64,000 bases of DNA from positions 29,078,001 through 29,142,000 of the forward strand of contig NC_088803.1 of NCBI RefSeq assembly GCF_011386835.1, given 5' to 3'. Positions 39,801 through 39,951 of this stretch are shown piece by piece; within the stretch, counting starts at the first letter, position 1, and each line of letters starts with the position of its first letter. A program made the translations under genes and the position numbers. The notes below the pieces were generated by a model that did no database searches, was not told the DNA's origin, and was given only the letters and a program-made list of their open reading frames with translations. Source of the stretch: Chrysemys picta bellii (taxonomy: Eukaryota).

Positions 39801-39936
39801 ATGCACGGATTGAACATGTACTGCTACCGAAAGTCTCTGATCAAAGGCACATGGGATGCACACACCTGAAGTGGAGCACCTCTAGGGGGACACCTCTAGA
39901 AGAACTCCACTTACTGCATAAGCTGAGTAACCTTTC
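36851..39936 (+). mobile_element. DIRS-type retrotransposon with both terminal repeats and ICR, apparently lacking RT/RNase H
   Basis: Left ITR about 36851-37035 is inverted at about 39722-39905; ICR about 39580-39674; gag-like GETHFPQKCSICSAF; YR WDLNLLL...PFEP and DLRRALAFYLDRTKPFRKS. Confidence 0.87.
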
Positions 39937-39951
39937 CTTTTTTAATTCTAG

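Follow-up and report, generated by a model that had tools for sequence, protein, structure and literature searches.

A DIRS1-like retrotransposon end adjoins the acceptor of the ITCH WW1 exon in a turtle genome and probably carries its branch point

We describe here a DIRS1-like retrotransposon copy of 3.1 kb (36852–39937/40), internally deleted, dead, and non-autonomous, which lies in sense orientation relative to the ITCH gene and ends next to the acceptor of the WW1 exon. It was found in a window of 64,000 nucleotides from Chrysemys picta bellii (contig NC_088803.1, positions 29,078,001 to 29,142,000), to which all coordinates refer. The WW1 acceptor is used faithfully despite the adjacent element. 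Because the element comes within 11–14 nt of an exon that is still correctly spliced, the branch point almost certainly falls in transposon sequence, as judged from the layout of the intron end. We favor, with reasonable though not full confidence, a model in which the element integrated directly into the polypyrimidine tract and generated a chimeric 3' splice site, in a tolerated replacement of the original signals. The features of the locus are collected in Table 1.

Table 1. Features of the ITCH intron end and of the DIRS1-like copy, in window coordinates
Feature	Position	Strand	Description
ITCH upstream coding exon, 3' end	34060..34119	+	...GPLPP plus the first two bases of a Gly codon (GG); in-frame ...CCACCTGG/GTA
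Donor GT of ITCH upstream coding exon	34120-21	+	GT..AG joint in 4 runs
Intron preceding ITCH WW1 exon	34120..39951	+	5,832 nt; ~2.75 kb minus the element
Left ITR	36852..37032	+	starts TTCTTCAAG; family contigs begin at 36852 with unlike flanks
Decayed interior	37033..39570	+	gag-like and recombinase-like ORF remnants, many stops, no RT
Left ICR	39571..39609	+	reverse complement of left ITR start; 78% over 37 nt; 29/39
Right ICR	39607..39674	+	reverse complement of right ITR end plus right extension; 55/68 = 81%
Right ITR	39723..39905	+	inverted match to left ITR
Right extension (rE)	39906..39937	+	32 nt; complementary to right ICR only
Branch-point candidate A39913	39913	+	cacttAc, -39; perfect yUnAy; AGs 8 and 13 nt downstream
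Branch-point candidate A39930	39930	+	gagtaAc, -22; 5/7 of UACUAAC; no AG before acceptor; 89% pyrimidines downstream
TTT, counterpart of the 3-bp junction core	39938..39940	+	element or host; TTC at left end
Host intron remnant TTTAATTCTAG	39941..39951	+	acceptor AG at 39950-51
ITCH WW1 exon	39952..40047	+	96 nt; AG 39950-51 before, GT 40048-49 after

ITCH is encoded on the + strand of the window, and its exons were treated singly, each by reference. The translation of 39953–40045 matches PDB entry 5xmc, ‘E3 ubiquitin-protein ligase Itchy’ (E 9.4e-33), and a second WW motif is found at 42335–42412. The joint between the upstream coding exon and the WW1 exon (34119/39952, that is 34118->39951, skipping 5832, GT..AG, cut +1) is present in four RNA-derived contig runs from three organisms, namely X15 and X24 (organism A), X17 (D), and X19 (E), with contig depths of 26–59, and a contig of 5,714 nt from X24 shows zero mismatches across both joined exons. 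Joints to acceptors other than 39951 were not listed in any of the four runs, whose contigs drop rare variants and isoforms, so that partial skipping of the WW1 exon or low-level use of cryptic sites would be compatible with this result.

Several minor observations concern the same exon and its intron. At 39994, within the WW1 exon, there is a synonymous G/A difference (GTG/GTA, Val), with A in X15 (organism A), X17, and X19, and G in X24 (also organism A) and in the window; it is either a polymorphism or a subspecies difference under one label. A word search with the ORF that runs from the element end into the exon, carried out in a database without turtle ORFs, returned nothing but short ORFs of vertebrate contigs; among them, P0003, P0004, and P0006 pass from an intron end straight into an identical WW1 exon; they read ...FIFS/WEQRV or ...VLFFS/WEQRV (also ...CFIFS) and finish with ...PPR-stop, not ...PPG. 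Further upstream in the intron, contig depth rises at 34660–34859 far above that on either side, to 113 in X17; loose ends occur at 34690 and 34724, and this peak is probably a small repeat expressed elsewhere.

The copy displays the terminal organization of DIRS1-like elements. In the scheme of Piednoel et al. (2011; PMC3266345), these elements are arranged as lITR-lICR-rICR-rITR-rE, with ICRs overlapping on a 3-bp circle junction and, in the elements of Anolis and Xenopus, an rE of 26–34 nt. In the turtle copy, the ITR pair (36851–37032 and 39723–39905) is 74.5% complementary over 188 nt (E 2.7e-24; 80% when gapped), 39604–39674 is the reverse complement of 39870–39943 (78% over 74 nt, E 1e-10), and the ICRs overlap on the circle junction GAA at 39607–39609, the complement of the TTC with which the element begins. 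It thus has the ITRs, the overlapping ICRs, and the rE of about 26–34 nt in common with AcDIRS1/2 of Anolis and with the Xenopus elements (PMC3266345), as well as the T-rich terminal trinucleotides (CTT/TTT) and the lack of a target-site duplication: its flanks read ...aattgttg and tttaattctag, and its left and right ends carry TTC and TTT, respectively. Unlike those elements, it measures 3.1 kb rather than about 6 kb, is devoid of RT/RNase H/MT, and is riddled with stops; with complete Anolis and Xenopus elements reaching 5.9–6.2 kb (PMC3266345), the copy has lost at least one large internal segment.

The interior contains short ORFs only, and the ORF pieces of the element gave no match either in Pfam or in a protein atlas search. 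Pieces from 38899–39253 align by tblastn with a DIRS-like fragment at 8484–8666 (46–50% identity, E 2e-8 and 7e-6), and the ORF pieces carry a ...LRRALAFYLDRT...LFV pattern that we take to be recombinase-like. With regard to RT, RNase H, and methyltransferase, no RT-like ORF piece was found in the 3.1-kb copy; given the terminal architecture, the placement of the copy in the DIRS1-like family stands despite the missing RT. The copy belongs to a multi-copy family, represented by dozens of contigs of 85–95% identity that stack on the ITR and ICR regions and whose flanks are unlike beyond 36852. At this left boundary the contigs start at 36852 and the sequence before it is unlike, with an agreement of about 0.5 (18 contigs in X15).

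The right boundary can be read from the element itself. Read backwards, the ICR encodes ...GTAACCTCTCC, then TTC, then left-end sequence, and the right end in the genome consists of ...GTAACCTTTCC up to 39937, TTT at 39938–40, and then TTAATTCTAG and the exon. The last unambiguous base of the element is 39937, and the host bases left before the exon are given as a range, 11–14, as the TTT can be assigned to either the element or the host. The gap-free match between the ITR end and the ICR continues through 39943 at 35/42. The original prediction that a DIRS end adjoins the WW1 acceptor is borne out by this match and by the family contigs alike. It had located the end at about 39936, with a gap of some 15 nt, which was right to within one to four bases and is now refined to 39937 and to 11–14 nt, and the stretch on which it relied is indeed the reverse complement of the ICR (39907–39936 falls within the 39870–39943 match). 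Far from ending well before 39910, family sequence is covered at the right end by contigs of X24, X17, and X19, which extend to about 39920 and about 39941.

These right-end contigs differ from the window at 39894, 39898, 39907 (C>T), and 39910 (C>G). As X24 derives from organism A, whose runs contain 0.96–0.98 of the words of the stretch, the differing contigs correspond to other copies of the family and not to alleles of a distant species. The segment from 39906 to about 39940 is DIRS family sequence. That 39906–39937 might be ordinary host intron resembling the ICR by chance has only the shortness of the segment in its favor; a gap-free match of 35/42 through 39943, the E value of 1e-10, the paralogous contigs from the same organism, and a length typical of an rE all speak against it, and we regard chance likeness as excluded by the ICR match and the paralogous contigs, with a probability that is practically nil.

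With this boundary, the whole interval between -18 and -40 belongs to the right extension or to the ITR end, in agreement with the earlier claim that the entire normal branch-point zone is transposon sequence, and the rE holds both candidate adenines together with the first six pyrimidines of the tract. The two adenines are located as first proposed, A39930 at -22 without a later AG and A39913 at -39. A39930 is the sole well-placed adenine within the AG-free zone 39928–39949 and is the best branch-point candidate. The use of a different element-derived branch point, either A39913 (CACUUAC) or several adenines in the rE and the ITR end, is the most probable of the alternatives, even if we consider it unlikely. 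A39913 matches yUnAy perfectly and UACUAAC at 5/7, and both of the AGs that come next are preceded by purines (aAG, gAG), lack a tract, and could therefore be skipped. Most human introns, moreover, have several branch points. Weighing against A39913, its position at -39, followed by AGs after 8 and 13 nt, is not within the AG-free zone in which a branch is normally found. A39930 is retained as the putative branch point. Among the assembled contigs of the runs there were no lariat-type back-joints to 34120. Joints that ‘go back’ from 39674 to 36992/36996 were considered as lariats and rejected, as they derive from paralogous DIRS copies.

The native branch region, in the left flank of the element, has come to lie 3.1 kb or more from the acceptor, a distance at which it cannot plausibly be used. 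A way around this distance would be the pairing of the two ITRs, which would loop out the 3-kb element and bring a native branch at about 36827–36845 to an effective distance of about 50–70 nt. For the ITR–ITR duplex, of about 188 nt, the predicted energy is -248 kcal/mol, and several branch-like adenines are present in the reconstructed left flank. Branch-to-acceptor distances shortened by structure occur in yeast; to our knowledge, however, there is no vertebrate precedent at such a scale. The ITR partners are 2.7 kb apart whereas the competing ICR pairing is local (about 200 nt), and the AGs at 39921–22 and 39926–27 would precede the real acceptor, yet only 39951 is used. We therefore consider the continued use of the native branch very improbable, and a branch within the element remains the preferred reading.

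The local ICR pairing deserves attention in its own right. In a predicted fold of 416 nt of RNA, a continuous helix of 20 bp is formed between 39924–39943, which includes GAGUAAC and the tract, and 39604–39623 in the right ICR, with a predicted unpaired probability of about 0 for 39924–39943. The ICR–terminus duplex is predicted at -93.6 kcal/mol, compared with -37.8 ± 4.9 for shuffles, and the whole fold has a z of -5.5. According to this model, a helix covering the candidate branch point and the tract would be expected to impede U2AF and U2 if it stayed closed in the cell; since the WW1 exon is spliced anyway, the predicted helix must be prevented from forming or unwound in vivo. The locus is, in this regard, a place to ask whether a stable intronic hairpin over a branch point matters in vivo. 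Together, the ICR–terminus and ITR–ITR helices represent predicted long double-stranded RNA, which might be a substrate for RNA editing or for helicases.

The terminus of the element need not be specially suited to its present position. In a simulation with 20,000 random 60-mers taken from the window and placed at the insertion point, 78% gave a branch-like motif without a later AG (at least 4/5 of yUnAy, at position -18 to -40), and about 25% also yielded at least 15/20 pyrimidines. The motif GAGTAAC is identical in the rE and the ICR, which by our estimate has a chance of about 17% under the observed decay. The tract has 16/20 pyrimidines at present vs 13/20 in the reconstructed pre-insertion end, ...CCAGACATGAATTGTTG-TTT-TTTAATTCTAG, an inferred sequence in which plausible adenines are found at -21 to -39. 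The terminus is adequate rather than specially fitted, and nothing in these data points to selection on it. The original prediction spoke of exaptation and of an insertion tolerated because its terminus provides a substitute; with 78% of random inserts offering a branch-like motif, this wording overstates the case.

All together, these data lead us to propose the following sequence of events. A sense-oriented DIRS1-like tyrosine-recombinase retrotransposon would have entered the pyrimidine tract 11–14 nt upstream of the WW1 exon, by means of a TTY core and without target-site duplication, and would have moved the former branch-point region some 3.1 kb further upstream. The integration model described for these elements involves a junction core shared with the target (PMC3266345). 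The resulting 3' splice site would be a chimera, in which the AG and the last 11–14 nt are of host origin and the 32-nt right extension supplies the branch point together with the proximal tract (CCTTTCC), with U2 most likely pairing around A39930 (GAGUAAC). The outcome is best regarded as an exchange of degenerate splice signals that was tolerated rather than adaptive.

The coincidence between the end of the element and the end predicted by the ICR fits a direct integration into a T-rich tract and not a later deletion. In the latter scenario, the element would have inserted further upstream and a subsequent deletion would have removed host sequence, including the native branch point. The element already shows at least one large internal deletion, and no empty site was seen among the organisms examined, both of which are in keeping with such a history. 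A deletion of this kind, however, would need to stop at precisely the final base that the ICR defines, with TTT left over in the place of the expected TTC core. Direct integration explains the exact end and the TTT without coincidence, and so we judge the deletion scenario to have little probability. If direct integration is correct, the empty site would read ...GAATTGTTG-TTY-TTTAATTCTAG and would contain a host branch point.

The insertion is shared. Within the element, contigs of X17 (organism D) have 98–99% identity to the window, with six differences at 37205–37512, two at 38639–38796, and three at 39044–39286, and a contig of X19 (organism E) has four differences at 38984–39171. The unique flanks of the intron diverge to an equal extent, with six differences at 34090–34608 in X17 and four at 36093–36345 in X19. 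This equality of divergence between element and flanks in D and E indicates that the insertion is shared and predates the split of the organisms. In organisms B and C, 0.69–0.95 of the words sampled from the stretch, half of which is element, are present, and the insertion is common to at least three organisms (A, D, and E) and probably to five, with B and C. Among the five organisms that contain the stretch there was no empty site, and no run contained a joint that skips the element. As these organisms have diverged by only about 1–2%, the shared presence alone says little about the age of the insertion.

A rough age can be derived from the repeats of the element. The K2P distances between partners are 0.22 for the right terminus vs the right ICR, 0.24 for the ITRs, and 0.32 for the left ITR vs the left ICR. 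Turtle neutral rates of 4.77e-10 to 8.43e-10 per site per year have been quoted (PMC4263362), and half of the K2P distances at these rates would correspond to roughly 130–330 million years, on the assumption that partner repeats were identical at insertion. The outer, ‘divergent’ part of the ITRs may differ at birth (PMC3266345); we have accordingly rejected ITR divergence as a strict clock, the outer ITR not having to start identical, and kept it as a rough estimate. On these distances, the copy is probably Mesozoic and, if the estimate is right, the element is predicted to be present in most or all living turtles.

There is ample documentation of new or aberrant exons whose branch sites, polypyrimidine tracts, and acceptors derive from transposons (PMC7951965). 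The reported cases include Alu, LINE, and LTR exonization and disease pseudoexons, with an AluY acting as the source of the BPS, the PPT, and the 3'ss, and a LINE fragment as part of a BPS (PMC7951965). Whereas these cases create new or aberrant exons, at the ITCH locus the replaced signals are those of a coding exon that is ancient, conserved, and constitutive, and the AG is derived from the host. In mammals, exons are flanked by ‘U-zones’ depleted of transposons, which extend over 50–100 bp and, for full-length LTR elements, up to 2–5 kb; within 20 bp of acceptors the depletion is strong, few of the transposons so close to an exon being found on that side, and it is there that disease insertions cluster (Zhang, Romanish and Mager 2011; PMC3088655). 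This depletion explains the rarity of insertions of the ITCH type, and the DIRS copy described here is a fixed survivor inside such a zone, in sense orientation and 3 kb in size. In the case of the OGDH intron, which has distant branch points, transposon insertions add or remove branch competitors (PMC7969005). Both there and at ITCH, transposons between the branch point and the acceptor reshape branch choice; the OGDH intron, however, keeps its own distant branch points, whereas the native branch region of ITCH is 3.1 kb away.

The less usual feature of the present locus is therefore an ancient constitutive exon whose own branch region gave way to a transposon; as a kind of tolerated insertion, it is rare but known, and no new kind of system is revealed. 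The locus amounts to a natural experiment: in an essential ubiquitin-ligase gene, a conserved constitutive exon had its branch region replaced wholesale, probably over 100 million years ago, and it is still spliced. It illustrates the degeneracy of the branch and tract signals of vertebrates. It also raises the question of whether DIRS elements land or survive in acceptors above chance.

In this respect, the ends of the family resemble splice signals to some degree. The family ICR consensus obtained from the loose ends of contigs, GTTACTCACCTTGTGCAGTAACTGAGGTTC, implies a right extension ending in AAGGTGAGTAAC, where the window copy has AAGCTGAGTAAC, and the family circle junction continues as CCTCTCC-TTC-TTTGAG, so that a branch-like UAAC is joined to a pyrimidine tract. 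One could imagine that DIRS termini are built-in mimics of 3' splice regions, whose TTY core matches pyrimidine tracts, and that sense insertions into acceptors are both favored at integration and unusually harmless; we find this doubtful. If such mimicry were true, turtle genomes should show an excess of DIRS right ends immediately before acceptors.

A donor-like motif is also apparent in the family consensus. By this consensus, the right extension would normally end in AAG/GTGAGTAAC, a consensus 5' splice site that overlaps the branch-like UAAC (39916–39931 and 39616–39631). The window copy has C at 39923 and T at the paired ICR position, 39624, and the AAG/GTGAGT motif of the family reads AAGCTGAGT in this copy. 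The ICR partner is ...CATCTT, and hence the source copy may never have had the AAG/GTGAGT motif.

Elsewhere in the window, no other DIRS copies of the same family were found. Fragments of other DIRS-like families are present at 6600–9500, 16191–16799, and 55633–56277, all on the + strand, decayed and without intact termini; among the three there are one ...DLFASHLNHK... piece and one RT-like ORF (...LGLRDAYFHI...). The fragment at about 6600–9500 was considered as a copy of the same family and discarded, since it shares only the ICR motif GTTAC...TTCAAGATGTG (about 9340–9390) and is truncated before the right end. In this DIRS-like region, 7610–7677 and 7703–7770 form a hairpin with arms of 68 nt, 93% complementary, and a loop of 25 nt. 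Finally, 5171–5665 and 6117–6580 constitute a near-continuous inverted repeat, with arms of about 400–500 nt at 79–94% and a centre of 450 nt, which looks like a foldback or MITE-like element.
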